From Bugula neritina (lineage: Eukaryota > Animalia > Bryozoa), in contig OZ037765.1 of NCBI GenBank assembly GCA_964035545.1, forward strand, positions 10,612,698-10,676,697: DNA of 64,000 nt. The letters run 5' to 3'. The position numbers were made by a program, and so were the translations under genes. Under the pieces are notes generated by a model that saw nothing but the letters and a program-made list of their open reading frames with translations, was not told the DNA's origin and ran no database searches. Positions 1 to 62,960 of this stretch are shown piece by piece (position 1 is the stretch's first letter; each line of letters opens with the position of its first letter).

Positions 1-782
1 ATTTTGATAAAAAACAATATATTAGCATTTTGATCCTATCTATGAAAACCCGATCTTGTAATAAACAAGTGAAAAGTGCTATCAGCTCAAATATAATATA
101 ATATAATATCAATCGCTAATAAAGGTGGAAAGAAAAACTTATAGATTTCAATGAGAGTTTTACCAAATTTGTAGCAACTATAATCCACAAGTTGCAGTAC
201 TTTTTGCAAAAAATCAATCAAACCTATAACATTAACAAGCTGCTCAATAACATTAACAGGTTTAAATGTTTTGGCAAGTGATATTTTCCTGGCCCTAGAA
301 GCTTTGCACAACACAAACTCCTTTTAAGACTGAGTCTTTTTGACATAATGCTACAGCTTTCAAAGACCGCTATCAGTCTATACTCTATATGATGACAGTA
401 GACAGTGAGGGGTGTGTAAGCTAACAGAGAAGGGAAGTTGTGAAATATAAACACACATTGCTATTTCACTACTGTTTATCAAGTAAGCACAAATAACATC
501 AAATTGACTTTTTGTTCTGTTAAAATAATAGAAAGAATTTACGTTGTAAATAAATTGAGCAAGTAAAGTAAAGATTAAGCATAAGTGCATGTAATATTAC
601 TTCCTAGCTTTAGTATAAATGCTCCAGTGTAGTAGCTGTTAGTAATTAACAATAAAGTTAAGCTGATCAGCTTCATGCATAACCCAACATATTTCTATAA
701 CAGGCAGCAGCTAAGCGCCAGACAACAGGTTTCTTACTGAAAGGCCCGAGTGAGGCAGAAATATGAACTATAATTCACTTAC

Positions 783-811
783 CGAGCAGGCATTTCAGCT
801 GCGGAGGCCAT
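783..811 (-). CDS. Possible first coding exon (MASAAEMPAR) of an unidentified minus-strand gene running off the left edge
   Basis: ATG at 811-809 in a locally GC-richer patch, followed by a consensus donor CG|GTAAGT. Candidate downstream exon(s) lie at ~224-377. No recognisable homology. Confidence 0.25.
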
Positions 812-1689
812 GTTTAACTACCAGTACCAGCTATATGCATGTGCCAACCTTCATCTTTCAAAACCTTATGATAACTAAAATAAAACACAATTGTGTGGTT
901 GAGCTAAAAGCCTGTCACTGTTACCAGCATATTTAGTCAAGTACTAAATGAAGTATATATTCATATTTGTGTAAAGGTAACCAGCTTAAAAGGTTGCATG
1001 TTTACTGCTGAATGTGCTGGATATATATCACAATACCTGGTATGATTAAATTGATCAAGTATACATTTTTCCAGTACACCTGCCACTTATGCAGCTGTTT
1101 GAGATGATAAGTCTTTGGATATGTTATTAGTAACAGCACTTCATAAGAGTTTTGATGGGAATATTTAAAGTGAGTGTGCAGCCACTGAGGGTAATGCTGT
1201 TCAACAGTAGATAGTTAGTTATATTATTGATTACCTGTATTAAGCAGCAGCAGCCTATAGTCAACAACTAGCTATTGCTAATCACTTGAATTCTACTTAG
1301 TATACAAGTTGATTAAGCACTGCTTAAAAATCCAATATTTTCTAAAAAGCATTATAGCATAACTTGAGACCAAAAAGAAAACCATTACAACTAGGGCTTC
1401 ACAAAAAAATTTGAGAACACATTTATAAACATAAGTAAGCTAGGCTAAAAGGATCAATTTAGAATGGATAATAATAAAGTTTGGTTAGGGAGAGCGAGGT
1501 GAAACAATGATGATAATATAAGATTAGCAGAATAAGGTCTTTAGGATTCTAAAAACTATTATCAAAGTCTCAACATTAGTATCACACGTTATTGATTTTG
1601 AACTCACTCAAACCTGTTGAGAGAGCAACAGACTCTAGGTTACCCAAACTGGTTAGAGAAAATCAACTACTGAGCCAATGTTTGTTTAC

Positions 1690-2760
1690 GCATGCTGCAA
1701 TAAAAATATAGAGTTGCATATGCGCAGGACCACGGGGATGGGGGGGGGGGTGAAAGGTGACCAAAGGTGACCATGGCGTTTGTGGATCTGAAAAAGGCAT
1801 ATGATCCTTAGAAAGCATGATACGGCACTGTTTGAGAAGCAGTGAGTGTTTGAGGCCAATACTGACATCATTAGGGATATGTATAAGGATGTTATTACCA
1901 GGGTTGCGAAAATCGTAGGTGAAAATGAAATTAAAAATGGGACTCCGTCAAGCTTCATTACTGAACCCATTATTGTTTGTAATTGTTATGTTTGTTTGTA
2001 ATTGGTGTATGTTGTTTACAGATGACCTGGTGTTGCGTGATGAGATAAAGGTTGAACTGGAAAAGAGGTTAGGAGGCTAGAGAAGACGACTACAGAGAAT
2101 GGAGCCTTAAAATTGGAGGCGTCAAAACAGAGTATCTCTTGCTCATGGGAAGTATGGGAGACATCAAGCTTGGAGAGTATAATGGCCCTGGGTACACTAG
2201 CTTGACCCAATGCACAGCTTTCAAATATCTTGGAGCAACTATTTACCAAGAGGGTTGTTGTAAAAGCAAGGTTGAGCTTGAATTAACAGGGCCTGGAACA
2301 ATTGGCGAGAACTGACAGGAGTCCCCAAAAAGTTAAAGTTACAATTTATCTACATAACACTAGTACATCTAAATAATGCTAATATGTTACATATTGTTAT
2401 ATAAAAATAAGACATGACCAGTTGGCTAGAAGGGTTGGAGTCTGTAAAATGAAAATGCTGAGAATGCTGGAAATTAGTTTGGAAGAGCATAGGACAAATT
2501 TAAACATCAGAACAAAGCATATGTAATAAATATAACAGAATTGATGAGGAAAAGAAGACTAGAGTGGTTTGAACATTAGTGCCGAAAAGATAAAAAGAAC
2601 GTAAAGAAGGTAAGTCAAAACATAGGTGGAAACTGGAAAGACACTACCGAGAAGGACCTTCAAGTTTGTGGCTTAAAGCAAGAAAATATCAGCATAGGAC
2701 CTGATGAAAATGTCTGGTGGCCTTGATATTCGGCAAGCATCCACTACTCGTTCAGGTGAG
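1690..2760 (+). mobile_element. Decayed RTE-clade non-LTR retrotransposon (RT and C-terminal remnant)
   Basis: Frameshifted fragments IIRDMYKDV, GLRQASLLNPLLFVIVM, MLFTDDLVL, FKYLGA, WNNWRELTGV, KMKMLRM and RRLEWFEH match RTE RT motifs in the expected order, with many stops. Confidence 0.8.
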
Positions 2761-2849
2761 AAATTGATGTTGCAAATTTACATTTATGAATGTACAATAA
2801 TAACTTAACTTATAATAAAGTGTTGTTATAATAGTTGCATTTGATATTT

Positions 2850-3860
2850 ATTTACCAATTGGCATTACACACTCGTACTGATACTGTAATTGATGCTCAT
2901 TGTGTGTATTGGTATGAATATAATGATGATATTAACTCACGGTTGCTGACTTAAACTCATGTTTTACTTTGTTGAAATAAACCTTACTTTTAGACTTACT
3001 AAAATTTTTAGTAACGGCAACATTAACTTATGACTACCGTTGGAGAGTTATAATAATAATAATACTAATAGCCATAGTTATCATAACCATTACTAACATT
3101 TATTAGATTTAATAATTAAATCATTTTCTATATTAAAAATTATTAAAAAAGATAAATTTAGATCAAATTACCAATTAAATTCAGTATATCACTATGTAGT
3201 TGATACTCAAATTCTGGTGAGTATGGTAATATTAACTGGAATGCACAACTACAACTACTAAATAATGGTAGTACTACTTGAGTAATAGTCACGAATACTA
3301 ATACTAATAGTAATATTATAATCCGCATATCAATAATATTCTTATTTATAATGATATTTATATTGGTATAGTCGCAGCCATTGTAATAATATAAAATTTA
3401 ATCATAATGACAATCATATCCATATCAATATGAACTGATATTAATAATTTCAATTCAAACTGTTTCCTATTCAGAAAAGGAAACAATTTGAATTTCAATT
3501 AATATTATCATTGTGATTAAAAATTAAACATTAAATTCAATATTTCACTACAACTTATAAGCATTATGAATATCATTATAATCATTAATAACTAAATAAG
3601 ATAATTTATTATAAAAATGTATTAATAAAATTCAAATTAAGAAGTAACAACTATAACAAAAAGCAAAATTCAATAGTTATAGTCATAAGACACTCAAACT
3701 AATAGCCAATAGGGCTAAGAAAATATTTAATACTTGTAATATAAATAAATATAATCATTATCATACCTATAATCATAATGATGATAATATTCATATTGAT
3801 ATTCCATTTAATAATTATAATACTAATAACCATATATGATATATTCTGATTTAACTTTAT
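2850..3860. repeat. Cryptic 3/6-nt periodic low-complexity block
   Basis: Runs such as aatact aatagt aatatt and atcata atcata atgatg ataata; no exact tandem unit. Confidence 0.75.
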
Positions 3861-6800
3861 AGCGACAGAGGGAATGACAGTGATTTTAGCGACGGGCAAG
3901 ATGAGGGGCTCTCACAAACTTACCCCACTCGACTGAATGTGAGTCAAAATAAGGCAACAATTCAAAAGAACCCCGAATCAAAGCAAAATGTGTTGCATGC
4001 CAAAATGAAGAATGCACCATCTTGGTTGGCAGTGGAAAAAACCAAAAAAAGCAAAAAGCTGATTTTAAGTGGATTGAATGTGACCTCTGTGCATTATGGT
4101 TCATAGCACTTGTCAGGATCTCAAGGTTTCAGAGGCAACTGCTATTGTCAAACTGGCCAGCAAGGGAGTCAAATGGTATTGCCCAGGATGCCAAAAAGGC
4201 TATACAAGGCCAATCACCATCTATCATACCTCAAATGTCCAAACTTAGCTGCCTGCAGCAAATGGTGGAAAAACTGAATGAAAAGGTGGATGAATACCAA
4301 CACCATACCACTGAACAAGTTCAATGCCTAAAAAAGTCCTGAGCCGAGAAACTAAAAAATGACCAACTGGCCAAAGATATGAAGCTCGCAGTGCAAGCTT
4401 GTACCTCTACCAAAGCTCTACTGACTGCAGAACTTCAGAAAAAAAAAGCTTGAAGAGCGTAAAAAAATGCCATTCTCTATGGTCTAAATGAACAAAAAAC
4501 TGCAATGGAAGATATTACCGAGCTGATGCAGAACTCCCTTTTTAAAAACTATGACAAACCACTAAAGGCATTTCGCCTTAGTCAAAAAGATGAAGGAAAA
4601 ACTCACCCTATCAAACTAACATTCAAGGACGAACAAGCAAAATGGAGCTTCCTCAAGAGAGTAAACCACCACTCGCGAGCTGATAAAATGTTTTGCAAAC
4701 TAGATGTTAACAAAGAGATACGAAATAGAGAATACCAGCTACGCGAGCAGATACGCAAGCTAAAGTCTGAAAATCAGGGTGAATATTGCATTAGAGACCT
4801 ATCTATCGAAAAGAAAAGTCTCTCGGGGAAACTGGGAGAAAATGAATCTTGTCACAACAAACGGACATTAAGCCTTTATGCTAACACTAGATCAGCAAAA
4901 GAAAAAACTACTGAAATCGCTGCCTTGACCAAAGACTTTGATATTATCTGCCTTACTGAGACCCATCTTGATGCCAACATATGTGACAGCTGCATTATAG
5001 AGACCCCTGGTCTGGATTTCTTTAGACATGACAGGAACATCCACGGTGGTGGGTTCCTAGTTGCTACAAAAAGTTTTTTGCAGGCTAGTAGCATAAACAT
5101 TGAGACATATGGTGAAGAAATGGTCATCATAAAACTTCCACCAAATCTTATTCTTTTACAAGCATCTGCGACACAAACGAAAGTGCCAACATCCACTTAC
5201 AAGTATTAAAATCAAAAACGGTAATATAACTACAGACAGTCTGGAATGCGCAGAAACTCTAAATAACGATTTTCGTAGCCAGTTTTGTGTTGATGAAGCC
5301 ATTACTGATCTCCCCCTTCTCCCTACCAATAGCAGGGCTCTTGAGATCAACCCTGAAGGAGTCAAGATATTAATTCATGATCTGAAGAACAATAAATCTC
5401 CAGGACTTGACCAGATACGAAAGTGTGAGCTTTTAATAGACCCTGGTATAGTAGCTCAATGTCTTACATGTCTTTCAGGCCTCAATAGACTCCGGAGTGC
5501 TCCCAGCACAATGGAGAACTGCCAATGTGACACCAGTCCACAAAAAAGGTGCCAAAGACGAGCCATCAAACTATTGCCCAATCTCTCTCACCAGCATCCC
5601 CTGTAAAATGTTAGAACACATTGTTCTACATTATCTAAACAAATTACTTGACAGCATGCTCTACAACAGACAGCATGGTTTCAGGAAAGGCTTAGGCTGT
5701 GAAACTCAGCTTTGTGCTTCCTACCACAACATAGCAAAATCTGTAGAGCATGGTCATGTTATTCATGGAGTAGTCCTTGATTTCCGTAAGTCCGTTGTAT
5801 TGATGGCATTAACCTAAGCATAGCAAATTGGATCCAAGGGTTCCTAACAAAAAGAAGTCAGAAAACTGCCATACGCGATGTATTATCATCAGATCTCCCT
5901 GTCTCCTCGAGGGTGCCACAGGGTTCGGTACTAGGGCCAACCTTGTTTCTTATATACATAAATGACCTACCACAAGTGATAACATGCTAAGTGAGTCTCT
6001 ATGCTGATGACACCCTGATTTATGCTGCTGTGAATAGCAATGAGGACAAGCAGCTTTTCCAGACATATATAGATGCTCTACATAAGTGGTCCATGAAATC
6101 GAAAAAATGCCTTTTAACACGGAAAAGTGTGAGGTGATCGTCTTTAGCAAAGCCCCAAAGGCATATCCAGTGTTTGACCCCAGCTATGCACTTGGTGGAA
6201 TTCCGCTCAAATGCAGACAAGAGATCAAATATCTTGGTATAATTCTGCAGTCCAACTTGAAATTTGAGCAACATATTACATCTAAGATCAAAAGTGCCTC
6301 CAAGGTCCTAGGTTGCATAAAACACTCGCTTTATGAAGCCCCTGCCAATAGCAAACTACTCGCATACACCAGTCTCTGCGGACCAATTCTAGAATACGGC
6401 GATACTCTTTGGGACCCAGCGGATTCAGCTAATATTGATGCCTTAGAGCAAGTACAGTCCCAAGCAATCAGATTAATTAACAATATCAAAGGAAGACAAG
6501 GCATCTCAGAAGCTCGAAATAAACTCAAACTACAACTTCTCAAAGACCAAAGAAAAACACATAGGTTGTCACTGTTAATGAGAATTCTCTCAGATGAATC
6601 TAAACACCAAACCTTAGCCTCAGCTTATGATGAACTGACTAAAAATAAAAACAAGTACACTATCACTATGTATACGCGAGCTGCACAGAGGGGTGAGCCA
6701 ATATCTATCTATGCTGCGAGCAAGGTCTATTTTAACAGTTTTCTCCCCCGCAGTGTGAGAGATCTGAAGCTAAGGTCAACTAACACACAACAATAAACAG

Positions 6801-6915
6801 CTATATGCTGCTATACTAACTCATACTGACATTTATCACTAACCAAAGAGGCGCTCCACGTTTGCACCATAACGGTGACATTGACTTTGAGTGTTCTATC
6901 GTCTACGAGGTGAGT
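3860..6915 (+). mobile_element. Degenerate CR1-type LINE: PHD-finger ORF1, then APE endonuclease and RT (ORF2), with an internal deletion
   Basis: ORF1 across a frameshift reads CQNEEC..WIECDLCALWF/HSTC..KWYCPGC (PHD). APE start: LYANTRS, IICLTETHL, DRNIHGGG. RT: [39 protein letters not shown]. The C-terminus FLPRSVRDL is CR1-like. Multiple frameshifts and stops. Confidence 0.92.
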
Positions 6916-7400
6916 TATTACTATTTGAAATATTATTATAATTATAAATAATAAAATATGATTTATTTTATATTATAAGTTTACAACTATTATTATTTAA
7001 TAATTTATAATTATCCGAATTAAGAATACTTTGATTTAAATTTTATTTTGTTGCTATTAGTATTAAAATTTTTATAACTTAATTTTATAATTTAAACTTA
7101 AGCCTAGCAGTAGCCCTAGTCTAGCCCTTTTAAGGCTTAGCTTTAACACGAACAGTAACTGTTAACTCTCGAGTTAAGCCTAAACGGGTAAGTCTAAGGC
7201 CAAGGGCTAAGACCAAGACAAAAACTAGAAGAGCAAGAACTAACTCTAAGACTAGAGTAAGAGCTAAAGTAGTTTTAGAAGTTAGAACAAAGCATAGGCA
7301 GCAACAGAATTCACGCATCAGAACCAAAATCAACATGTTATACAATACACTTTACCTATGGAGTTTATGAGTGTTATCATTACCATTATGATTATTACTT
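6915..7400. repeat. Cryptic hexamer-periodic block
   Basis: gctaag accaag acaaaa actaga ... tctaag actaga gtaaga gctaaa. The 6-nt period produces the spurious alternating-residue ORF 7130-7345. Confidence 0.75.
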
Positions 7401-7790
7401 ACTAAATTACTGGGTTGCTAATTTTTACAGCGCAAATTTTCATTGAAACGGTGGCCGATTCTTGTTTAAGCGCACTTTGACGTATTTAGCCTCAATTTTG
7501 CGTGCGCACCAAATTAAAAATAAAATTTAAAAAATTTGCAAAAATTTTTTTTACAAATTTTTAAAATTTTATTTAAAATTAAAAACAGGTAACTCTAATA
7601 CTGGTTGTATACTTAAAAACTTTGCGGCTATTGAAACTTTATCAGAGCCCTTGATATTATAACCATAATAATAATGTTTAGGGACGCGAGAGTAAACCCG
7701 CTTTCTACCAAAGGGTTCAAAGTCCTACAATGATAATATCGTTCCAATGAACTCAAAAATATTAAGTCTATTCCAGCTCAGTGTATCGTT

Positions 7791-7972
7791 CTGTTGGTCC
7801 TGTTCGATTTGTTTTATAAGCAGCTTCAAGTTGGGGGTGAATGAGTGCAGCAGCTTATAGTTCTCAAGTTCAAACGGAAAGATACTGACTAAAAGTTGAA
7901 AAACTCGAAGCCTACACTCAATCACCCCTAACTCGCAGCTGCTTATAGAACGATTCGTGCTGCTCACCAACA
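7791..7972. repeat. Imperfect inverted repeat (~80-bp arms, short loop) upstream of SETD9
   Basis: tataagcagcttcaagttgggggtgaatgagtg (~7816-7848) is the near reverse complement of cactcaatcacccctaactcgcagctgcttata (~7915-7947). Pairing extends, with mismatches, both outwards and inwards. Confidence 0.85.
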
Positions 7973-8097
7973 AAAACCTTGACCTGGGGATTTTCCAAAA
8001 TGGTACACTAACTACACCAACTTAGACGTAAAGCTTAAAACCTATAAACTTTTGAAAAATACCAGCATACAGTTACGCTCACACTGGTTTTACATTT

Positions 8098-10699
8098 ATG
8101 ACATGGAAAGAGTATCGCCACAGGTTTTTGCCTTGGATAATACTTAATGGAAAAAACAGGTAGGTTCAAGTTTTAATACCTGACTGGCTGACACTACTAC
8201 TACTAGTACAGTAGTGCTACTACCAATATGAATATGGCAATAGTAATACTATTAGTGTAAGTGTTACTTATATGATTAGTATAAAGTATTGCTAATACAA
8301 ATTGAAATACTAATAGTATTAGTAATATCAATAGCTGATTTGACTTTACACTTGGAGTCTTGCAATTTTCTCTAGGCACTTTTTAAAAGTTGTTTGCAAA
8401 AATGACACAATCAAATGCTGAAATGCATATTCATGTTAATATAGATTTATTTTAATCGAGTTTTATGCTGCCGATTTGACGTATTAATGATTAAAACTTT
8501 AGATGATGTCTGTTGCAGGTTTCGTCAATGTGTAACTTCGCCAACGTCTTTCCAAAGTGAAAATATTGATGTTGAGTACTACGACCATAATTTTCAAATA
8601 AAATTAAAAGACTACTTGAGCAATGTAAATCACCGTCTGTCTTATTTGGGATGTACTGAAACCTTCTCTCAAGCTCACATGCAGCGTAGTTTCAAAAGAG
8701 ATACAGAAATTTTTCATAAATCATCTTATGAGTGTGCTTCAGATATCCTTGGCTTTTCCCTTTGTCGTTCTTCAAGCTCAATAAAAAATGCAGGCTTGGG
8801 TGTGTTTGTTGCTTTTGGAAAAATACCCAAAAATTCTATCGCTGCTCTTTATCCAGGTAAAGTGTACTATCCTCGTACATTTAATCTGTGCTGTGTAGCT
8901 TTCTCATGATAGATTTATGTTTAATTAGCATCATTAGGTTTTTCATATTTTTCATTTTGCAGGTTTAATATATGAACCAGGTGAGCCAGTATTATTGCAG
9001 TCAATACATAATCAATTTGTTCTCAGATGTAAGGATGGGGTTTTAGTTGATGGTAATGATAGAGGAATTTCTAAATTTTTGTATAGGTAAGTTTGTTGCA
9101 GACTAAATTAAAGGACATATTTTTACCCTACCAGCTGTTTATTGGTAACATATGATAAGCTGTCATTTGGTCTCAGCAATTATACTAAAATAGAAATAAA
9201 TTAATAGTGATGTTGACTCTGCAGTTTGCATGTTAACATAATAACAGCAGAACAATGCAGAGTTTATCTGCATCTATAGGTTTGGACTTTTTGTGTTTGC
9301 TTACCAGTATATACTCAACACTTTTTGGGCATCTGAGCATTCCACTACCATTTTAAGCTTTAGTCGTAGAGTTTTGTCTGAATTCATCTGCATGAAATGA
9401 TTAGATTGCATTTTTATTCACCTTGTCTGGCAAATGCTTGCTGTAAATAAGTTTTACTACTGCTGATTTTACTACAATATAAAGTCTTGAGGTAATGAGA
9501 CTCATTTTCGTCTCATCTTGAGAAAATCGTTGAAGCAATTAAAAATTAGACATATGTTTGCTCTTTTTGTACAAGTAATTTCAAAACTAAGTCTCGTTAA
9601 ATTTAGTTTATTTTATTTTAAGACTAGATAAACTAATGATCAGCTCAGCAATGTTGTTTTGAAAAAACTTTATATTTTACAATTGACCAATAATAACCTA
9701 CTAGAGTTTTCTTTTTCCAAATCCATTTTTTCGAATACAATTATGGTATGCCACAGACTGGTTCTGTTGGCTGGGAATAAACAGATGTGTGCAATCAAAT
9801 ATTTGATCATTGTTATTACTATTGTTAGATAAGGCTATTATATTGCATGATAGTTAAATTGTATTTTGTCTTAAAATGATTGTATTCGGAAATGTTTTTT
9901 CAAGTTTATCATAGATAAAACTGCTAGACTAATTTATTAACTTTTAGAAGCTGTGCTGGTCGAGATATAGTTGGTAGTCACCTCACATGTGATATATCCT
10001 GGTTAACAACTCATCCAATAAACGTGCTGTCTGTGGGCCAATATGTTAATAACCATAATGAAGGTAGGCTTGTTTATGAGAAATATATTTAATTTTCTGT
10101 ACAGGTGTCAAATATTTTTAAAATCATAGTGCAATGTAAGCCTTTAGAGGTGATGAAAAAAGTTTTTGAATAAAAAAGTTGTTTTATGAGATATTCGAGA
10201 TTTCTTCACTTAACTTTTTCTGATATCTTAATAATTGTATATAAGTTTTTGCCCTTAAAACAAGACTCACTTTTTACAAGTGCTTATAAGTTCTTGTGGC
10301 TATTGTGGCCAGCATTGGTAAAAAAAATTAATTTTCATATCTATAATTTTTGCATTTGTCTCTTTAGATAACCCTGCTAATGTAGAATACCAAGAAATCG
10401 ATTTGTCCGCCGATTTTCCTGATAATTTACTAAAATACATTCCAAATACTTACTACAGTGCTAATCATCAGTATGGCATGCAAAGGTTTGTATTTTCGGT
10501 GAACGTTGATCAATGCTATGGAGATTTCTGTTATAAAGACTGTTCTATCATAGTGAAACTCCTTTTCAATTAATGATTATAATACTTGGACTAAATTGCT
10601 CTTTTTAACAGGTTAAGGCGAATAGTAATGCTAAGAAGTTTGAGAGATATCACAGCTGGAGAGGAACTTTTTTCAACCTATTTTACAACCACACTGTAA
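8098..10699 (+). CDS. SETD9: SET domain-containing protein 9 (6 coding exons)
   Basis: Exons 8098-8159, 8519-8856, 8963-9086, 9948-10063, 10368-10485 and 10612-10699 splice in frame (GT-AG). Motifs WKEYRHRFLPWI, SSIKNAGLGVFV..ALYPG, LRCKDGVLVDGNDRGISK, GQYVNNH and RDITAGEELFSTYF are characteristic of SETD9. Confidence 0.92.
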
Positions 10700-11566: not shown

Positions 11567-14500
11567 CTACACAATGGGTTTGCCATGCTGCATTGTCATG
11601 TTTTGTTTTTTTAAAGATGACTCTTCTTGCCTGAACGCCAGCTTTGTATTCTTCTTTTCTACCCGTCTTTCCTATTAAAATAAAAAATGTGCTTGCAAGT
11701 GATAATTATATATAGAATGCCTTTCACAAAGCAGTGTATTTTTGTAGAATAGGTTGAACTTCTTGGTAATAGCTAATTGCAAACAGTGAAGATAAAGAAC
11801 ATGGGATCAGATAGAAGATGCATTTTCTGAACAGATCAATTGAAGCTGTCAATTTTCAGTGAGAAAAGCAAATAGAGCACAGCACAAATGTATAGCTTGA
11901 AGAAATTGCTTTACTAAAAATAATACTGGATGAATAATAACAGCTATATTAGCATTTTGAAAATATGCCCGTGATTTTTGAAAATCTTGCAGAGATTGAA
12001 ATTTATATAGTGTACTGTTAGATACAAACCTTTCGTTCTGCTTTGACAGCAGCTTTTCTCTGGCGTCTCTCTTCACTTTGCTCTCCTCTTTTTCTAACTG
12101 GTGCAACAAGCACTTCCTCATTTAGGTTATCTAAAGCCCGCAACTGCTTTTTGGTAAGGCCCCTTGATTGAATGGACTCCACAGGTATACCCAACTTTTT
12201 AGTTAATTCAATCTTTTTGGATGAGTTCTATAATAAACCCAACATTTGAACTTCTTCAAAGCAATGCAAAACGCATGTAATTCATTGCTGCTTAATAAAA
12301 TACAGAATGGTGGGCTACCTTTTTTTTCCAAGGATCTTCAATAACCTTTGGATGATTGTATATATCAGAATAAGTACCTGCATAAAAATAATACAAATGA
12401 ATGATGCAGCTGTTTAAAGATTGTCAATAGTATTAAACACCATGACAGGATTACAAATGTAAGTAATAACACTATCGCAGGATTAAAAATGAAAATAATT
12501 GCGCAGCTGAATGAACAATGAACCAAAAAACTTACTCAGAATGGATTCACAATCCCATTTACTTGTATTCCCTTCATCCACCACAACTACCTCAGTCATT
12601 TCTTCTTCACTTTCGTCATCACTTTCCATATCTACTTGTATATCATCTCCATTTAGCTCTGAATCAGGCAGGGTACTAAAGTAAATGAGTTTAAAGATTA
12701 GTAGAGTGCAATTAAAATAGTTTAATAATAAATCTATTTTTATTCATTACCATTTCTAGAATAAACAGTGGCATGGTGGAATATTCTATGCTTTGTTTTA
12801 TAAAAGCTTGTCTATTTAGCACAACTACGAAAGAGTTGTTAACAAACCGGATTTTTAGCATCACAGCAACGAAAACATGAAGAAAACACGTTTAAATGGC
12901 ATACGCTAAAGTTTAGATACAATACCAATAACAATGCTTTTCTATAACGTTATCAATTATTAAACAAGGATTTGACCCGTGTTTTGCTTAAATAAAAATA
13001 TGGTTCCAGCGCAATTTTTCTGAACAAAATTTGTACAGCTTTTATTAATTGCATGACTCTGTGAAATATTGTACACCGAATATTCAAAACACTCAATTGG
13101 CTCACAGTTGGACACAATGAAAGTAACAAGTAAGTAATATAAATTGCCAAGACTATACATAATATAATACTTGAATTCAATTAGCAATTAAAAACATACA
13201 CTTTGACTTGTTGTTTTTCAAATTGCTTCAGCAAGAAATCCATAAGGGGACCATCAGTACCAACTTTCCCATCAATTTCTTCATGATCCAAAGCACCAAT
13301 TTCCTCTTCATCATATTCAGCATACAACTGCGAAACATTTAAATGTCAATTTCTAGACATGCAATACCTATATTAATAGGAAAAGATAACAGCCCATCTG
13401 TAATCAGTGTCATCTCGTAGCTGGAATACAATTGGTAACAAAACATTTGCTAACAATAATTTCTGCTTTCCAATATACAGCTGGTGAATAAAAATTTATA
13501 AACTACATACTCACTTTTTCAAATTTATCGTCAAGAAGTGTAAGGGCAGCATTTCTGTTCACAACAGAGCTACTCATTGAGTAACTAGTGAACCTAGTTT
13601 TAGCCTCATCCTCCGAGAAAGACTCCATTGAGCCAATCTCATCAAGATCCTCACCATCAAAGTCTGAAGATATATATCCATCTCCTTCCTCCCTGAAGGT
13701 ATTAGAGGCAGCCCCACATCTGAAGAAAATAGCCTATCTTATCATTTTCTGATGATGGTGGTGCTACCAACACATGAAAGTATTATACCCTTTATCAAAA
13801 TTTATAGTCAACATTCCATCTGTGTGCGCGAGTGTGTGCGTGTATACAATTAAACTGCTACTCAAGAAATATACTTTTAAAAGTGGGCAAGTTAACAAAT
13901 ATATAAATATATACCTAATACTCTGACTTAATAACAAACTAAATCACAACAAAAGCTATAATAAAATTAGTTAACCACCTAAGTTAAACAGTAATACTTT
14001 GTAAGTTAACATTTTGACCTGCATGGCTGTAATTAGGGCTCAGAGCTGAATACCAATTACCCAGTCTGCCAGATTGTATCATTACATCTAGTTTTAGTGA
14101 TTGGAATAGCAACAAGTTAAGGAACATGGTTCCATTTGAACTACAATATGCTTGCAATATGTATGCTAAACGAAAAGACTTCAATTTACCTCCTTTACAC
14201 ACACTGTTAATCCGATTTGATCTACGGAATGGTCACACATAAACTGCAATGACAAACACACCTTTCAGCTGACGGTAACATTTGCTCCTCAAGCCATTTG
14301 CTTTGCCTATCACCGACACTCATGTCGTCTTGAGACATTTCATCTCCGCTGTGATTAGCCATAGTTACAAAGTCATCATCTAGTTCTCCATCAATGCTTT
14401 CCTCATAATCACTATCAAGGGCAGCAACTATATCAGGATCCCAGTCTATCTTTGGCCCTAAAAGTACAAGCTTTGCAATAAACAACTGATTAGTAAATTT

Positions 14501-15287
14501 ATTGTTTGGTAAAGAATCGCATTGTTATACATTTTATAAACTAAGTAAGTTTTTAATTGAACTACACAAATAACTAAAACTAGCAGTACCAGAGACAGGA
14601 GCAGCCAATTCCAACATGCCAATTTTTTCTTCAGTTTCAGAAGGTAAGACTTCTGCAGGTAAAGTAACTCTCGACTGAAATAAAAACAAGTAAACATTGA
14701 TTAAAGGACATGACTCGTCAAAGAAGGTATACTGGACTACATAAGCAGATCATTGTCCGGTTTCTCACCGCGGCAGTAGAGCCAACTCTGAATAGTTCCA
14801 AATCTTCTGAAGGTTCAACTTGATTCATTTGTTCGACTGTCCTCATGTGCTGCTCATAATTATATTCATCATCATAATAAATGCCCATAGTAGCTAGGCG
14901 CTCTTTCTTAGCAGCTTGTGCCAACTACAACATATAACACAAACTCAACTTTAAATGTGATAAGTCGAGCAACAAAACTGGCCCACATAAACAAAGCTTT
15001 CTAGCATTAGAGATTTTTGAAAGTGAGCGTTTCAACAGGGTACTAACTTTACAAAATAATAAGCCCACCTCATCACCGGTGACAAGCACCATTCGAGACG
15101 CATCTTCATCAGCTTGCAGGGGATCTTTCTGACTTCTATGTATTAGTTGATATGTAATGGCATTCTTTTTATCTATGAACTTTTTCTTTTTTCTAGGCTA
15201 AAAAATCATTAATAATTTTTGGGTGCCTAAAACTAAACTTAATAGGATATTGTTGCAAAAAGTTGCCAAGAATTATTTACATACCAT
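11567..15287 (-). CDS. LTV1: Protein LTV1 homolog, 40S ribosome biogenesis factor (~11 coding exons)
   Basis: ATG-only exon 15287-15285, then 15197-15069, 14924-14769, 14674-14590, 14457-14262, 13719-13515, three short exons within ~13328-12319, 12227-12030 and 11671-11567. Motifs: MPRKKKKFIDKK..LIHRSQKDPL, GIYYDDEYNYEQH, DPDIVAALD, TRFTSYSMSSSV, YDEEEIGALD, KWDCESIL. Confidence 0.95.
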
Positions 15288-15949
15288 GTTGAAGAAATAA
15301 AAGAATCTGTATAACGCCTTTTCAGTCTATTCCGTAGCTCAAACAAACTACAAACAGAATTGTCATAAATAAACTGCAACAAACAAAATACAGGCATTAC
15401 CATGATGGTGAATTACAAAACTCAATAATAAACTTAGGCAGCTTTATTCGCAAAAAAAACGTTAACAAAGCTTGAAAAACAAATGAAAACTGTATTGATG
15501 GGTATTAAACGATAACAGCTACCATTATACATTATTACTGTTGCTAGACTTCAAGTTATCTTACTGAGCCTGCAACAGCGGTAAAATTTGACATGTGACA
15601 GCTTTCTTACTTCTGATAATTTATAGCTATATTTTTTGACCATTTTATTATTGATGACAATTAAAATAAGAGCCAGCGTTATTATTGAATGGGTAAATAA
15701 ACTGTCTAAGTCTTCTACAACTTTTTAAATAAAACTATAAAAATTGCTACATTAACTTCACTTGAAAACAATAAATCCAAAAAATAATAATCTTTTCAGA
15801 TGGATACTGATGTGGGAATTGTAGCAACATGCATTATAACAGAGCGCATAAATAATGAATGAAGGGTAAATTAGCTCGCCATAAAGCAATACAAAAGCTG
15901 CTTAGCATAAGAGTATAAAAATCTAGTTGCAAATGAGCTTAAATAATTT

Positions 15950-16633
15950 ATTTGAACTATCAATGTACTAATTACTGGAGTTAGATCAATATGGTCATGA
16001 GTATCAGCACTCGAGTACCAGTATGCGATTGAGTAGCGCAATCAGTTACACCATCATTATGATTATCATTATGAGTATGTGTATTGAATATGGATTATGA
16101 TTACTAGTATCAGTATGACCATCACCATGCCGCATGCGACATGTCATTGTGATGGTTTATCATTATGACTGTAAGTATTATGGCTGTAAGTCACTAAGTG
16201 TAGGATTATCACTATCACTATGACACTGAGTCTGATTATCACTATGAGTTAGAGCATCAGTAGGCTATGATTATCATTGTGATTATGAAGTGATAATCAT
16301 TTTTATTGTTATTATGATAATCAATAATCATAATGATTTTTATGATGACTTTGATTTAGTTTTATCATAAGTATCCAAGTATTACTATTAATATTAGTAA
16401 TGCTGTATTACTATTAATATAGACATGGTCACATACTGATATTGATTATTGATACTCATAATTTAACGTTAAGTTGTTTGTAATTGAATTTAAAGTTAAA
16501 TCTAATGTTACAGTAAAACTAAAAGTAAATGTAATACTCTAAATCTAATAGTTATTAGTTATAGTTATACTAAGAGTAAGACTAATACACATACTTACAG
16601 TTATACTTGTAGTATTACTATTAGTTAGTAATA
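15950..16633. repeat. Cryptic hexamer-periodic block (consensus about A-N-T-A-T-S)
   Basis: attatg attatc attatg agtatg ... agtatc agtatg accatc accatg ... attatc actatc actatg. Confidence 0.85.
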
Positions 16634-19435
16634 GGCCCATCTCAAAATATTTAGTACACACAGAAAAAAATTATCAAAAAATAAAACTTGTAGTAGAAAG
16701 CTCAAACTTTGTGATAAGGGTAATTATCAGGTGCTGAATTCAAATATGAAATTATTTTTTTGCTATAGGTGCTTAAACTTGACCTTTAACCTCTCAAAAG
16801 TCTGCAGTCCAAAAAAATGGTGAAATATAAATGTTTATATTTTAATAAGCAAAACATGGTTTTAGACTAATATAAGGGCTCTGAATTAAAAAAAAATACT
16901 AGTTTTTATCTGTGATAGACACATTTATACCTTTGGCTCTATAAAGTCAACACCCAAAGAAAATTTATTAAAAATATTGCAGCATAAAGAGACAAAAGTT
17001 TTATGATTGGTTTTAAACAGAATGACTTTATTTTGGAAAATAATTTTCTACAGACTAAACTTTTAAAATTGACAGCATATGCATACAGCAGGTGCCTTTC
17101 CAAACCATCTATGAGGTAGGCTAATAGCTTGTTACTTTTTTGTATAAATTGACAGTTCACCAGTAGTCCTATTATATCGAGTACAAGACATTCACACAAA
17201 CAAAATGCATGCACAAAACATAAAATATTGTCAACAAACCATGAAAAACATATTCACTAACACACTTCCTTCTACCTTATCTACACTCACATCTCCTCCT
17301 ACAAAAAACAGTAAGACAAATTATAGAATGTTTGCTAATGTTGATGTACACATTTAAACTTTCATCATTATTTCACAAGTAGCAGTTGCAGAAACCATGT
17401 GAGCTTGAGCTGATGTTATTGCAGCCCTCTCAATATTTTGCTAGTTGTAGGAGTAGATTGTTTAGTCTACATTTCTATTGTACTGGCTTCATCGTAAGAT
17501 TTATCTAAACTTAATTAAGCTGTATATTTCAAGTATGATTTTTATTTTAATCGCTCTTCTGAACTTTCAATTTGTCTATACTTGTTCAGATGTTGACATA
17601 CTCCTCAGTTGTTGCTTCCTTCTCTCTTGCTGCACTTCGGACCACTGCTTTTTTCTGATGAAGCATGGCTCCTAGCAGTGGACTGTTGCCTGGTCTTGAA
17701 AGGCATAGAACTATTCTATACAATATAAAAACTAAAATATATGAGTTTTTTAGTTTGGTAAGCTATTGAGACTAATGCTTAGAAGAATGAGGGTTAGCTA
17801 TAATCTAAGTTATTGGCTATTAATAACTTAATGAATAAGATAATGAAACTAAATAGTTGCAAAACAAGAGCTAGCCTACAGAATAAAGTTGTATTTAAAT
17901 TGACTATTAGTGTTACAAGCTATTACACTATTGACAAGTTGTTAGCAATGATTAATTTGCTTAAGTACCCGTAGCGTACATGTCCGTAGTATAACTTACT
18001 CATTCAACTTAGACCTAAGGAGCTAATCCAAATCACTATTATGTACTAAGTAGATATATTAACATATTAATATTATTGCAACTTATTCCTAAATTTCTAA
18101 TTAAATTAAATTTATCAAGTGCAAACTATAAAAAATGCCAATAAGCAGGGATCAAGCACTCAGAGTGAGAGTAGTGAGAGTAAGAGTAATCACTTAATGT
18201 TTATGTTATTAAGAAAAGTAATACTAATAGTAATAGTATTAGTATTGGTAATATCATATTGAGTTCAATATCATTACACTTACAGTTTGAATTTACACAT
18301 CGCAGTTTACAATATTCAGTATTGACTATTGAATTCAAAATGAATCATTAAATGGTGAATGGCTACTACAATTTCAATTTGAATTTTAAGTTGCTGATCG
18401 CGACAATAAAAGTTTTAGTTGAATATAAATTATGGCAATTCAAAACTAAAGTTTAAATACGCAAGTGCAATTTAAACTTAATGCATTAAAAAGTTATTTA
18501 CTTAGTTATTTAGTTCTTATTTCCCCATTATCATTAATTTTAAATTATTAATAATAGAAATGTTATGATAAACTTAAAGAGTTACTCGTTATCGTTATGA
18601 TTGGGATTATCATTGTAAGAATTGATAAAACAAAAGAATAAAGCCTTAGAGAAAAATTGACTGAAAGTTATATTGTTTGATAAATATAAAAAGTTATGAG
18701 AAGTTTGGAAAAATACAATTAATACTAACCTGACGAAATAAATGAAAACTAAACCGCTATGCCATCAGATTATTTTCTTGGCAACAAACCGGATGCGCTA
18801 ATATACTCTAAATTCTAGAAGTTTCAAGCTGACTTTATTTATGAAAACAAAATGGGATTACTGTGTAATTATTTTATACTTATGAATAAACAGAATAAAA
18901 ATATATTTCTTGTTGTAAAAAATGAGTTTGAGCAAAATAATAAAATTTAACTATTTTATTTGAGAGTGTAAACAAAAAGCGTTAGCAATTTCGTTCTCAC
19001 GTGCTCATACTCAATTTACGGACAATTGTTGCGGACAAAAAATTCGTGAGGTTGAAACACTAAAACAGGAATATCTAAACTTGTACTGCTAGGAATTAGA
19101 CATTCAGCACACCAAGAGATTGACAAGCTTTTTTAGAACAGTTTAAAGAAAAGAATATAATCATAATATATATTTATAAGAAAGTTATGCTATGTCAAAG
19201 TTGAAATGTGTTACCCACTGAATTTATTTTTCAGTGGGTAAAATTTATAAACTTGTCATTTTTTCAATAAAAAATGCATAATATAGCTTAAATATACTAA
19301 TTTTATAATAAATTAAAATGTTTTTTATTCTGGGACACAGTGAGTTTACATATTTGAAGCATCAGAGAGCTAGACAACATCATTTTTGAAAACCTGTCCT
19401 TATTTTGCACTGTACTAATTATTTTGAGATGAGCC
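16634..19435 (-). mobile_element. 2.8-kb DNA transposon derivative with ~25-bp TIRs and a 4-bp TSD (Sola-like by TSD length only; unconfirmed)
   Basis: Left end ggcccatctcaaaatatttagtaca matches the reverse complement of the right end, ggctcatctcaaaataattagtaca. AATA flanks both ends. Subterminal gtgctgaat motifs occur in inverted orientation. A decayed minus-strand reading frame starts MPFKTRQQ at 17706. Confidence 0.8.
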
Positions 19436-22250
19436 AATACTAATAGCAAATGTAATACTAATAATAACAGTAATGGTAAGTTAGTAAATCACTAAAACTA
19501 AAAGTAAATGTAATAGTCCACCTAACAGTAACTGTGAGTTAACTACAACATTAAATTAATTTTATAACTGTTCAATTAATGAATATAAGTAAAACTAACA
19601 CAATAGCAATATGAATAACATTATGATTATGATTAACTTTAAACTCACTAAGTCTAACTGTAAGTGTAATTGTCAGTATGAGTATTAACTATAACTTAAC
19701 AGTAACAGTAACTAACTATGATCAAATTCAAATATATTTTATTATTATAATTTTATTAATTTAAAATTTAAATTTAATATTCAATATTTATATAATTCAT
19801 ATTCATATAGGTAAATGATAATCATAATGCCAATGATAATCCTAAGGCTAATGATTAGATTTGAATTAAAACCACTGCACACACTAATTCTAAAACATCA
19901 AAACACAGTTATTCAAGATGAAATTTAACAATTAGTTTTACTGATACACTTTACTTTATTTTAATCTATCCCTAAAAGTACATGGCATTACTGATACATT
20001 TAAGTTAAAGGTAATTTACTGATTGCATATACTTTTACTTTTAGTTATCACTGCATGCTCATGCTGATAAAATGAGATTGATGGACGTAGTTGCATGCTG
20101 GAAGCGAGCAGTATCGATAGTTAAGTGTAGTTTTGTAGGCAGTATTTTACCTGCATTAGTGAGTCCAGTGTTAAGAAAGGTTTTATCTCCGTTTATTATT
20201 TAGCTCACAGTTTTATTGTTTACCAATAGAGTTATCTTCTCACATTATTGTTTTATTGTTTCATCATCAGAGGCAGCGGTCAAGTATTATATAATCGAAG
20301 AAGGAGTGGCAATGAAGAGCTCAAACCACAAAACTAACGCTACTTAAGAAGATAACTCTATGTTCCAAACTAAAATTGGTAGGCTTGTGTGAAAGAGATA
20401 AAAAAGAGCTTCACTGGGTACTACTGACCTGGGAATCTTCATCTCCACCACAATTTATCATAGTAATAGTAATACTAGTAACAACAGTAATCTTTGTTAG
20501 TTTCAAATAGAGCTATTTGATTTACCCAGTCCTTTAGTAATATTATTACTATTAGTATTAGCATAACGATAAGTTAAAAGTATACTCATACTAATAGTTA
20601 TAATAGGAATATTATTATACTAATGTCTACTACTTAAGAATACAGTAGTCGTAGACGTAGTACACTAATTTACTGGTACAGTAGTACTAGTACTAGTAGT
20701 AGTAGTAGCACTAGTAGGACTACTACTACTAGTACTACTACGTCTACTGCACTACTACTACTAATAGTAATACTAATAGTAATACTACTATTACTATTTG
20801 TGCTAGTACTACTACTAATACTAGTAGTAGTAGTAGTAGTAGTAGTACTCTAACTCTACTGTCTCTAGTACTAGGTCTAGTAGTAGTACTCTTACTCTAG
20901 TACTATTAGTACTAATTATCTAATAGTAACTGTAATGCTAATGCTTATACTAAATAACTCATAGCAATACTAAATAACTAATAGGAATACTAATAGTAAT
21001 ACGAAAAATAAATCAAAATGGCTATTATTATTACTATTAGTATTAGGTATTTGGCATTAGTTATGCTTATACTTTGACTTTGAGTATTACTATTAGTATT
21101 ATACTGTCAGTTATACTTATATTTTGACTTATAGTTATATTCAATAACTTAAAGTTATACTAGTTATGGAGTTGCAGTTGAGTTATTGCTTATATTTATG
21201 ATAATAATTAAATCACTTATAATTATTTATTATATTTACATTATTTTTATTAATATTAATTATTAACTTATACTTTAACTTTTAGTTATTAATGTTAACA
21301 GCTATTTACTATAACTAATACTATTGCTTATTAATATTAGTTTAGACTTACTCATTTACAACAAGTATTAGTATTACACAAGTTTATAAGTATATACTTA
21401 ATCTTTTAAACTTGTGGAACAGTCATACAAATACGTGTACTAAGTGAATAAGTCTAAATTTAAGTAACTTATACAGTTCTAGCAGTATGGCTTATGAGCA
21501 TGAACATTAGTATTATATAATTATAATGCTAACAGTAAGTGTAACTATAACTATTAGATTTAGTATTGCTACTGGTATTACAAAGTATTACATAGTGAAT
21601 GATTTTCTGTGATCTGTTTGATATTGACATTGCAATTGGTATAAGTATTACATTTGTTATTAGTAATAATAGTATAAGCATTAGCATTACTATTATACCA
21701 AATCTAATACTTATACTCACATAATGATAGTATTTTAATATTAATAATCAATCAGAGCAATGAAATTTCAATCGTAATTATAATAATTTTATTTTTAATT
21801 TCACAAATGCTTTAAGTTTTAGCATTTCCTCTGTTGTCCTGAGGCCGATTATGATTTCAGTGTAGATCACAGTCAAACATCGCCATGCCCATAGACCCTG
21901 GATCAACCGTTGAATTTTAGAACTGTGATTGATTGTCACCCGTTTAATTTTTTTCCATTACAACCTTAGCTATTAACATTATTAATATTGATTTTTCCAG
22001 TTTCACACTCAGAATAATTAATGTAGTTTAAATGAATATTACAATCGTTTACGGTATGACTGTATGAGTGTATTGTAATCATTAGAAATAGATTATAAAT
22101 GTAATATCATTACTGATACCATTACTAATAGTGAAAGTTATAGCCTATTTAATTTTATATGACTGTTTCATGCTAATAGTAATACTGTAAGTGTAACTGT
22201 AACCATATGCATATCTTGCAATGACCATTACTATGTGCTGAAACCCTTCA
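19436..22250. repeat. Long cryptic 3/6-nt periodic region, including (AGT)n/(ACT)n runs at ~20640-20900
   Basis: agttat acttat attttg acttat agttat; agtagt/actact arrays; interrupted by two GC-richer islands. Confidence 0.85.
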
Positions 22251-23919
22251 GATATATTAACTTGTTAACACCAATATCTCCATGCAAACCCTAACTTCTA
22301 TTTTTACTTTACTTTACCTTTTTAGTTGCAAGTTTTTACCAGTTGCGAAAATAGAGGCAAATTAACCATTTAACTGCCATATGTCATTTGAAGTATATAT
22401 TTCTTGCCTTAAATCAAACCCTGCATAAAAATTAATTTCTCAAAGGCTTTTATGGTACGATTGTCACAATTTTAAGCCTATACTTTTTAGTGCGCTGCAG
22501 TTGTGCTTTAATATTGTGTCACATTTCAGTAAGTTAGTTGAAAAAAAAATTAAAACTAGCATTGGCAGTTGCAGCAAAGCAATGCAACATTAAATATAAA
22601 TTACTATTCTGCTTTTAGATGGGTGGTGGACAAGTTTAGAATCTTCTGTAATTTTTTTCAGTCACTTTTATCCGAATGAGACCACAGCATCTATAGAATC
22701 CTGACTTCTCTGTGGAAGAGCCTTGATAATGAAGATTTAGAATATTTAGTACATGAATAGGTATGTGCTTATTTATGTTCAACAGCATCTTAGAACCTAA
22801 CATGAAACGTTCTCTGTGTTTTAAAGCTCATCACATTATAAATGTTATTTTCAATGTTTTTCAAAGATTTTGTTATCTGGTATTTTTTTTATATTGTAGA
22901 AGTTTGATATGTGTGTCTAGTATAGACATTATTTGATGGGCATCACATAATAAATTTTATTTTTTAAGGAGAGTAAAAATGTCACATGATTGCTATAATT
23001 GATTTTGAAAGGTTAATTTTTATGATTCTAAATCATTTATAAAATTATAGTGTCTGTTGTATAGTCTTCATGCATAATACTAGACCTCCTGGTGGAGTTA
23101 TTGGGATCCCATCAGTCATATAAAGGGGAGGGGGCGCCTCATATCTTATTGTAACAGTAGTATACCTTGTGGTTTAGATTTATATTACTTGTGGAACCCC
23201 CCCCAATCTCTCTTGTCGAAAAATATGCTGTTTTGTGAGTCATTAATAGAAACTGGGTCATTTTACTCAATTTAGTACACATTCGAAATCTCCAGTTTTT
23301 AGCTATTTTTCCCAATTTAGCTGCTAATATATATGGGTTTTTGCCTAAAACTAATAGCATGTCAATAAATACAACTAAATAGTCAAGGTTATTTTTAATT
23401 TTGCTTAATATCCCATGTTTTTCCTAATTATTTAGCTAATTTGGATTTGCAGACCGTTACAGTTTTTTTCGTAACGGTAGCACATATATAATATCAAGTG
23501 CATATGACAATGACGTGTGCTTTAATGTTGGGGAATCCCCTCCCAGCCTTTTCTGTTATGCATAATGAGAATCGGCACATACAAATACCACGTATAGTAA
23601 ATTTCAATGAATTTTGAGCAAACTTTAATGTTAGGTCATAATTTGCTGGTGTGTACTAAATGAAGTAAACTGACTCAACTAGTCTGTTTTATTCTGTAAT
23701 TTGAGCTTCCTTTTAGGTAAGATTTAGTAGTTTACTATGACTGCATAAAGTCTACTCAAATAAAGGTTCCATTTGAAGGACTAACAACCCTGATGTGTAG
23801 CTTTGTTTGTTAGTATTTGTTTTATTAGTATTTTAATTTAATTAATAGAATTAAACAACAGCTGTAATCAAAGAAGGGGGTGAGTAGTGGCACAAAGTGG
23901 ATGCCTAATCAACTCAATA

Positions 23920-51394
<27,475 letters not shown>

Positions 51395-60099: not shown

Positions 60100-61170
60100 T
60101 AAATGGTATTGAATAATCATAATCATGATACCCTTACAAAAAGCCCTGCCCCTTGGTAAGGGGCTAAGGCAGTAAGTTATTGCTTTCACCTTTTAGCCTT
60201 TAGATTTATCCTACACAACACAAATTCAAATTTTAGTTGCGCATACTGATAGTGATACTCCAAGTAGTAAAGTATATTCACATTGATTCTGAATTACTGA
60301 CTTTGAATGTGACATTCACTTTTAGCTCAAAATAAAAATTAATAAATAATAATTAGTTATTATAATCATTGATATTTAATGTTATAATATTATTAATAAT
60401 AATAATATTAATAATTATAATCATAATTTTTAAAGTTTTAAAAAGTAATCAGAACCTTTTGTAACGGTCACAGTATGCATTTGTAAGTTGCCAAAAATAT
60501 GTTCAGTTTTTATGGTTCATATATTCAATTTTATAATCACAATGATACTGATCTAATCATAATGATATTATTAAATGTGATAATTTAATAACAATAATCA
60601 TAATGGTAGTTACCAAGCAAAGCTTGGTAGCTAAATCCTGTATTTGAACAATACGGCTTCACGCCTCTAGTACGTATATAAAATATTTTATAAATCGTTT
60701 TGCTGCTGGTAAAGAATACTGGTTACACAAAAACTACACGAGCAAGGTATATATTTGGGCCGTTAAAATATTTAGCCTCTTATTCTTAGATCTGCAATCG
60801 AATAAAAAACAGAATGAAAATAATACTTGCAGCCGTCTTTCAATCTTAATAATATTATGTCGCACAGGTTTAAAAGTAACTCCCAAAGATGGATTGTTCA
60901 ATGCGCTTATCCTAATCAACTTTCACCAAATCCAATGCATCAGCATGTTTATATTCATATTGATATCGACTTTATTATTACTATGACTATAAATTTACAA
61001 CTAAGAGCAATATTATTAAACTAAGTATTTAATAATGATTTGCACTGTTCAAGTTCATCTTACACGGTTACATTCACGTGGACTTTGAGTTTTGCTTTAG
61101 CCTTTGCTTTAGGCTTTAAGTTTAAGTTTAGAGATTTAATTTATTTTTAATAAATATAATAATATGAGTT
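60100..61170. repeat. Cryptic 3/6-nt periodic block
   Basis: For example tttgag ttttgc tttagc ctttgc tttagg and aatcat aatgat attatt. Confidence 0.7.
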
Positions 61171-62435: not shown

Positions 62436-62960
62436 ATAATAAAATATTGTTATTATTATTATTGAATTTGAAATTAATAATTTAAATTATAAAATATGTA
62501 TAGTAATAATAATAATTTTAGTATAAAACATAATAATACATGTATGTTATACTTATTATTATATTTTGATTTATCATAACAATCATTTGATTTTATTAAT
62601 TTTAAATAAAATATTATTTTTACTGTTTAAATTTATAATAAAATTAAATATAATTCGTAATAATTAGTAATTTAATGTTCATAAAGTTATAGTTTTGCTT
62701 TGTATTACGTGTAGTTATAATATTAGTTATAACTATTGCTCTATAAGTTTTACTCTTACTAATAGTAATAGAGATAGAGCAATGATTAACTTTAAAGGTT
62801 ACTGATTAGTCTAGCTCTTAGTTCAAAATTAGCGTTAACAGTAATTGTAAGTGTAAACTGTAAGTGTAACTTCTTTTGCCTTAGAGTTTATACTTTTAGT
62901 TATAGGTGTCATACTAATAATTTTACAGGTTGTAATACTGTTAATTTTTGTTTAGTTCTA
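62435..62960. repeat. Cryptic 3/6-nt periodic block upstream of INTS10
   Basis: agttat aatatt agttat aactat; attgta agtgta aactgta agtgta. Confidence 0.7.

Follow-up and report, generated by a model that had tools for sequence, protein, structure and literature searches.

Six-base-periodic DNA without a fixed unit at gene starts of the bryozoan Bugula neritina

How can DNA keep a six-base beat for kilobases and never settle on a unit to repeat? The question arises at the divergent gene pair LTV1 and DOCK7 of the bryozoan Bugula neritina, in the spacer at positions 15950-22250 of the 64,000-nucleotide stretch of chromosome 1 (10612698-10676697) that we analysed as a whole and call the window. 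An initial annotation, made from the letters alone, had described this spacer as periodic at 3/6 nt with a drifting consensus, had placed similar DNA on the promoter side of other genes, and had offered two explanations: a promoter or chromatin code analogous to the periodic An/Tn clusters (PATCs) of Caenorhabditis elegans, or a locus-specific slippage process. Our best reading is that the tracts belong to a genome-wide class of hypervariable simple-sequence DNA that brackets promoters and fills discarded 5' leader. As to their origin, we tentatively favour, at somewhat short of even confidence, hairpin-assisted multi-unit slippage DNA in the promoter-proximal leader, mainly the scar of a DNA-level process rather than a code.

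We scored periodicity in 150-nt windows as the mean match at lags 6 and 12 minus the mean match at lags 4, 5, 7, 8, 10 and 11. Scores of 0.10-0.51 came in sharp blocks, within 15950-22250 and in two other head-to-head spacers (Table 1), and bases scoring above 0.10 made up 7.2% of the window compared with 0.1% in block-wise first-order Markov simulations. Besides the AGT/ACT run (20680-20850) and a single weak row of hexamers (11 copies, 66% matches), Tandem Repeats Finder (TRF) reported from the window only short arrays of about 2-3 copies (period 6-41). Head-to-tail unit copies are short in the window; a clean array, in which a 12-mer is repeated about 50 times, lies in SETD9 intron 1 of a second lineage, from Virginia, described below. 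The excess at lags 6 and 12 together with the short TRF arrays bears out a 3/6-nt period without a fixed unit, and the consensus does drift, from a TNA/ATS lattice at 16.0-16.3 kb to a TA-S-TA-W lattice at 20.4-21.7 kb. Computed over 300 nt, phase-coherent Fourier power at period 6 stayed at or below 4.5 and was weak throughout except in the AGT/ACT run at 20.55-20.85 kb, indicating that the phase of the tracts slips often; the further claim that register is largely kept is therefore true locally but not beyond. At lag 10 the tracts had no excess of matches, and 10-bp phased A/T runs of the PATC kind were not found in them.

The repeating element is a strand-symmetric pentamer, TA-S-TA, plus one W (S is G or C, W is A or T). 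An S is followed by another S six bases on with a frequency of 0.50 in tracts compared with 0.21 in AT-matched controls, and the position profile T A. T A S T A. T A S, which is that of the main DOCK7-side tract, is identical around G and around C. Across the 216,009,554-base assembly (321 contigs; the published genome is given as 216.00 Mb, PMC11480708), three successive TASTAW units occur 20,209 times on the forward and 20,238 times on the reverse strand, against 4-11 expected per strand; for the ATS lattice, which served as reversed control, the counts are 2,671 and 2,655. No polarity relative to gene direction was found for ACT/AGT, for W, or for motifs resembling 5' splice sites or branch points. 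On both strands the tracts are depleted of A/T runs of at least 4 (12.7 per kb vs 29.5 per kb in AT-matched controls) and of poly(A)-signal hexamers (7.6 vs 11.7 per kb).

The two variable letters of the unit behave differently. In a microsatellite neighbouring units should be alike at every position; here W is copied and S is not. Genome-wide, central W letters in four-unit runs are alike in about 90% of cases ((5041+4832)/11009), whereas central S letters are alike in 38.4% (3101/8073, p ~1e-97), and after CC or GG the following S differs in 70-85%. The same split holds among the window and the loci fetched for comparison, where adjacent S letters are alike in 41/95 and W letters in 75/95 (p = 7e-7). 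Agreement of S by unit lag, tallied by hand over the first 100 places listed, was 0.36, 0.42 and 0.60 at lags 1, 2 and 3, a pattern that points to higher-order steps of 18 nt and of 12 or 24 nt. Where neighbouring S letters are complementary they form an 11-bp dyad, TASTA-W-TAS'TA, and as single-stranded DNA the tracts fold better than AT-matched introns (-13.2 vs -8.6 kcal/mol, p = 0.0007; z against shuffles -1.1 vs +0.2). Three sources of the scrambled S were considered and rejected. Flipping by C-to-G point mutation accounts for 3/61 substitutions in tracts and 16/290 outside; inversion of local segments is ruled out because it would flip W too, and S varies within runs of constant W; and quasi-palindrome perfecting leaves no mark in the window, where a null with randomised C/G yields equally many hairpins. 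A full-text literature search returned no description of such promoter-side six-base tracts.

With transposons removed, tracts occupy 44% of 5'-side DNA in the window, 0.4% of gene bodies (43.6 kb) and 0% of the two tail-to-tail spacers; in AT-matched subsets the shares are 57%, 0.6% and 0%. The earlier impression, gained by eye, that the texture is missing from tail-to-tail spacers and gene bodies thus held up under measurement, and promoter-side location recurred at a second locus, about 47 kb of Joint Genome Institute (JGI) metagenome contigs from the B. neritina complex that are 85-93% identical to chromosome 2. There, tracts lie upstream of the exons of a FERM gene, 0.35-1.3 kb upstream of the start exon of PGM (whose acceptor is 45 nt before the ATG) and at a divergent AT-skew switch, and none was found in gene bodies or at the convergent AT-skew switch of these contigs. 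Pfam searches, run on single exons, place LTV on the minus and DOCK on the plus strand; tracts also occur at SETD9 and in the 60-63 kb spacer. Within the LTV1-DOCK7 spacer, the non-periodic core between the two tracts is where we would place the bidirectional promoter region of both genes. CpG observed/expected ratios revealed no clear islands in the window by which promoters could be placed.

Table 1. Features of the window, in window coordinates. Tracts are hexamer-periodic blocks called by lag score; LINE, long interspersed nuclear element; TIR, terminal inverted repeat.
Feature	Position	Strand	Basis or remark
Tract (2883-3579 and 3699-3851)	2883-3851		lag score; LINE separates it from 7073-7333
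Tract upstream of SETD9 promoter region	7073-7333		lag score
SETD9 coding exon 1 (MTWKEYRHRFLPWIILNGKN), donor AG/GTAGGT	8097-8158	+	matches N-terminus of NCBI SETD9
Tract filling SETD9 intron 1	8169-8379		lag score
LTV-family gene (LTV1)	14225-14524 (exon)	-	Pfam
LTV1 first exon, ending ATG/GTATGT	15285-15349	-	mRNA contigs
Tract, LTV1 side, mostly TNA/ATS lattice	15970-16637		score 0.17-0.25
2.8-kb TIR transposon inside pre-existing tract	16638-19432		RNA contigs stop sharply at both ends
Periodic stretch within TIR transposon	18158-18434		present in all 97-98% copies
Tract, pre-insertion continuation of 15970-16637	19437-19909		lag score
Non-periodic core between two tracts	19910-20404		score ~0; AT-skew sign switch
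Main DOCK7-side tract, TA-S-TA-W lattice	20405-21755		score up to 0.51
Last tract block ahead of DOCK7 body	22106-22254		lag score
DOCK gene (DOCK7)	DOCK-C2 at 35.0 kb, DHR-2 at 46.1 kb	+	Pfam
CAP-Gly/ankyrin gene (CLIP4 of the initial annotation)	52.3-59.2 kb	-	Pfam
Two tract blocks (60179-60473 and 60904-61153)	60179-61153		spacer from CAP-Gly/ankyrin gene to putative INTS10
Tract near putative INTS10	62672-62916		lag score

The DOCK7-side tract contains an inverted patchwork of (AGT)n and (ACT)n at 20680-20850. The earliest DOCK7 exon that can be recognised is presumably 25513-25731. Internal introns of DOCK7 carry, at 26398-26906, 35682-35873, 45002-45127, 46780-47399 and 33878-33986, clean minisatellites up to 0.6 kb long, whose units of 16, 13, 21 and 17 nt are repeated up to 36 times with 86-91% matches, and a perfect (TA)54; many of the units are rich in GTA/TAC, yet they are off the hexamer lattice.

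Much of this DNA is probably not spacer at all but transcribed 5' leader (first intron or outron), a point that the initial annotation had overlooked. For mappable gene starts, tracts fall within 5' leader DNA. SETD9, whose product is 94% identical to the NCBI SETD9 of Bugula neritina (P0001), is one case: the tract in its first intron begins 11 nt past the donor, the acceptor is at about 8510, and the tract thus lies between the start and the first splice acceptor. A word search with SETD9 exon 1 found matches from B. neritina alone. In the third spacer, tract 62672-62916 stops about 40 nt short of an acceptor-like site (~62955) and 160 nt short of the ATG of the putative INTS10.

At LTV1 the leader appears to be removed in another way. 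Three LTV1 mRNA contigs (1.5-1.8 kb, from three studies) all end at 15349, and one of the three carries 23 extra letters that are absent from the window. These letters occur seven times in the genome, and six of the seven occurrences are clustered on chromosome 3 (31.46, 31.51 and 31.63 Mb), each followed by the donor AG/GTAAAT and set within conserved flanks with a conserved upstream box; the RNA of such a leader gene would be about 130 nt long, with a stable predicted fold (z = -4.0), and the gene had no match in Rfam. Because the extra letters match clustered genes resembling those of spliced-leader (SL) RNAs, LTV1 is trans-spliced at about 15347 (to 15349), with a leader of at least 25 nt (…CTAGACTAACTTCTGTTGCTAAAAG) seen in one contig. 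The tract starts 620 nt upstream of this acceptor, which makes the DNA upstream of it a candidate outron. Trans-splicing means that mRNA 5' ends in the B. neritina genome are not transcription starts. A seventh leader copy (chromosome 2, 10831157) keeps the upstream box but has ACTAAGACTAAG… where a GT donor would be expected, and could be either a variant leader gene or a pseudogene. A full-text literature search found no report of spliced-leader trans-splicing in Bryozoa.

How the tracts change over time can be read from a contig of the Virginia draft assembly (GCA_010799875.2, PMC7576161) that aligns to window positions 1-9237 at 85-92% identity. All three tracts of that interval are kept in place in the Virginia lineage. 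Substitutions affect 8.8% of alignable tract and 8.4% of the DNA outside, with the same spectrum, including S-to-W changes (48/61 in tract vs 231/290 outside). Length changes do differ: the tract indels are of 1, 1, 1, 1, 3, 3, 6, 6, 12, 13 and 24 nt, and 6/11 are multiples of 3, compared with 8/43 outside (p = 0.024), as expected if tracts change length by whole units. A large difference lies in SETD9 intron 1, where (AGTACTGCTGCT)n and ACT/AGT arrays span about 1 kb in the Virginia lineage, roughly 5-fold the 0.2 kb or so in the window; GRAMD1 intron 1 of the same lineage holds (ACT)~20 followed by (AGT)~22. These unit-length indels and the lineage-specific 1-kb array support the earlier suggestion of a slippage process, but not its locus-specificity, as the genome holds tens of thousands of occurrences of the lattice. 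A comparison of two JGI assemblies of one locus gave 0 substitutions but 6 indels, those of 32 and 21 nt falling at or in a tract, although assembly error is possible. Non-coding divergence of the UK reference from the Virginia draft and from the JGI contigs is about 8-15%, which fits the known cryptic species within 'Bugula neritina'.

Transposons are abundant around the tracts and bear on where the tracts come from. The initial annotation had itself raised the possibility that the blocks align to one transposon or satellite consensus. They do not: tract pieces of 678 and 881 nt match more than 200 loci on all chromosomes, mostly at 67-79% over 100-380 nt and mostly on both strands, and these matches share neither ends nor a consensus. 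For the 678-nt piece the best long match reaches 78-79% over about 110-125 nt; the 881-nt piece, apart from itself, is matched best at 72% over 280 nt. A few short matches (40-90 nt) reach 91%. The TIR transposon that splits the LTV1-side tract has nine genomic copies at 97-98% identity, 4-bp target-site duplications and termini GGC(C)CATCTCAAAATA…. Its target-site duplication here, AATA, falls within the tract, so the element was inserted into an existing tract and is not its source. Diverged relatives have a weakly periodic, unalignable stretch in place of the element's own periodic stretch, which was inherited with the element and not made locally. Related elements of about 5 kb, with 72-83% identity, occur on chromosome 5 (9.667 Mb) and chromosome 1 (13.68 Mb). 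Contigs from runs tentatively labelled RNA match the element at 95-99% and in three runs join 17299 to 17603. Elsewhere in the window a LINE with endonuclease and reverse-transcriptase open reading frames (3507-7265) splits a tract; the corresponding Virginia site is 46 bp long, and the LINE is an insertion polymorphism between lineages. In the third spacer, a reverse-transcriptase fragment (61344-62347) lies amid the tract blocks. The Virginia contig in turn has at 8979-9719 a 740-bp insertion resembling a miniature inverted-repeat transposable element, with inverted GATCGATC-rich ends, that is absent at window 7711-7815.

Taken together, these data point to a DNA-level, strand-blind and promoter-tied process or property, and argue against an RNA signal and a repeat family. 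Under the slippage account that we tentatively favour, slippage during replication or repair would generate the lattice and keep renewing it, several units at a time, in steps of 12, 18 and 24 nt. These steps would be favoured where neighbouring S letters are complementary, because the 11-bp dyad TAGTA-W-TACTA can stabilise slipped hairpins. The driver would be specific to promoter-proximal DNA, for example open, negatively supercoiled and repeatedly melted DNA or origin activity; mere tolerance of repeats would not be sufficient, because internal introns hold other minisatellites and not the lattice.

Several observations weigh against this account. Plain slippage predicts alike neighbours at every position, a prediction that the S letter violates. 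In the window tracts the order of C and G showed no departure from coin flips, whether for direct repeats, inverted repeats or short hairpins, and because of this randomness the hairpin preference is drawn from the genome-wide perfect arrays only. That nearly all gene starts carry tracts in three lineages, in spite of turnover, would equally follow from selection on the texture. The comparison of orthologous tracts covers a small sample, about 700 aligned tract bases. Finally, no RNA contigs were found over 15350-16050 or over the core at 19910-20404, and transcription of the tracts upstream of LTV1, DOCK7 and PGM is something we infer; over the tracts themselves, RNA contigs are short partial matches from other loci with false joints and are uninformative there.

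The alternative that survives best is that the lattice is a selected duplex-level element, in which TA-S-TA arrays at 6-bp spacing mark or insulate promoters as a functional analogue of PATCs. The array could be read by a chromatin protein that is symmetric or binds the minor groove, or the selected property could be a physical one such as melting, flexibility or nucleosome affinity, with slippage only renewing the array. We regard this as possible but on the unlikely side. It would explain why S and W keep their places although the G:C pair may face either way, why strand symmetry is perfect, and why A/T runs and poly(A)-signal hexamers are depleted on both strands; every 5' end examined had tracts, AT-matched introns and 3' spacers lacked them, and their position is kept across three lineages while their sequence turns over. 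Selection on individual bases is hard to reconcile with a substitution rate and spectrum that equal those of the neutral control, S-to-W changes not being avoided, with tract lengths that vary about 5-fold between lineages, or with the three transposons tolerated within tracts. What keeps selection in play is the near-universal 5' location, together with the rule for S, which plain slippage leaves unexplained. In its fullest form, a strand-blind TA-S-TA lattice every 6 bp would mark most B. neritina promoters, base-pair strength and not orientation would be what matters, selection on duplex properties or a symmetric DNA-binding factor would maintain it, and it would organise chromatin or the choice of start sites, the transcripts then being trimmed by the spliced leader; we consider this fuller proposal unlikely as it stands.

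An RNA-level signal in outrons and first introns seems to us improbable. Tracts do occupy first introns and the DNA ahead of a spliced-leader acceptor, their commonest hexamers include TACTAA(T) and GTAAT, and poly(A)-signal hexamers are depleted, so that UACUAAU motifs resembling branch points, GUAAU/GUAAG motifs resembling 5' splice sites, or long imperfect hairpins could be imagined to aid trans-splicing or first-intron removal, to block premature polyadenylation or to feed a small-RNA pathway. Against this, no strand bias relative to gene direction was found: ACT and AGT are balanced at 85/85 on the DOCK7 side, 5'-splice-site-like motifs number 32 sense and 30 antisense, branch-point-like motifs 17 and 15, and the polarity of W is mixed. 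An ATG-rich (TNA)n variant also occurs, and many strong donor-like sites would compete with trans-splicing. To the remaining idea, that the tracts are remnants of one promoter-near transposon or satellite family, we give hardly any credence: the regional transposon does carry a periodic stretch and transposons are frequent in tract spacers, but that transposon landed in a tract already present, and the weak two-strand matches at over 200 loci converge on no consensus.

Known systems resemble the tracts in parts. PATCs of C. elegans, which protect germline genes from silencing, are likewise periodic non-coding DNA tied to a class of gene region and not to a repeat family, but their period is 10 rather than 6 and they spread through introns, whereas the tracts flank promoters; of the analogy originally proposed, only position carries over, since the 10-bp period is absent and A/T runs are depleted, not clustered. 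Tautz-type 'cryptic simplicity', that is, cryptically simple sequence, and microsatellites of promoters or first introns share with the tracts scrambled short motifs without a fixed unit, unit-sized indels, enrichment at gene starts and polymorphism between lineages. Repeats are, for instance, enriched at human gene starts (PMC3566118). Unlike cryptic simplicity, B. neritina has one lattice that dominates genome-wide, makes up about half of 5' DNA and is strictly strand-symmetric, with W copied and S not. CNG repeats and AT-rich palindromic repeats have, like the tracts, self-complementary units, better single-strand folding and big lineage-specific expansions, (ACT)n beside (AGT)n being the case here; they differ in that the B. 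neritina units are hexamers with a built-in W mismatch, and in the window the C/G order yields no more hairpins than random. The outrons of nematodes, tunicates, flatworms and other trans-splicing organisms, like the DNA upstream of LTV1, are AT-rich, lie upstream of a spliced-leader acceptor and are removed from the mRNA, although for the tracts transcription is presumed. We know of no periodic lattice described in outrons elsewhere.

If the lattice is mutational in origin, it would be the visible genome-wide footprint of a DNA instability specific to promoters, and would offer a natural system in which to follow the life cycle of repeats and slippage assisted by hairpins. A selected lattice would amount to a new promoter or chromatin signal at the sequence level, one that carries its information in how strongly the bases pair rather than in the sequence itself, and strand-blind marking of promoters, if true, would add a new, sequence-encoded kind to the promoter architectures of animals. 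On either reading, the lattice is to be read together with spliced-leader trans-splicing, and it provides a practical marker of gene starts that needs no annotation, in a phylum where genomics is still scarce.

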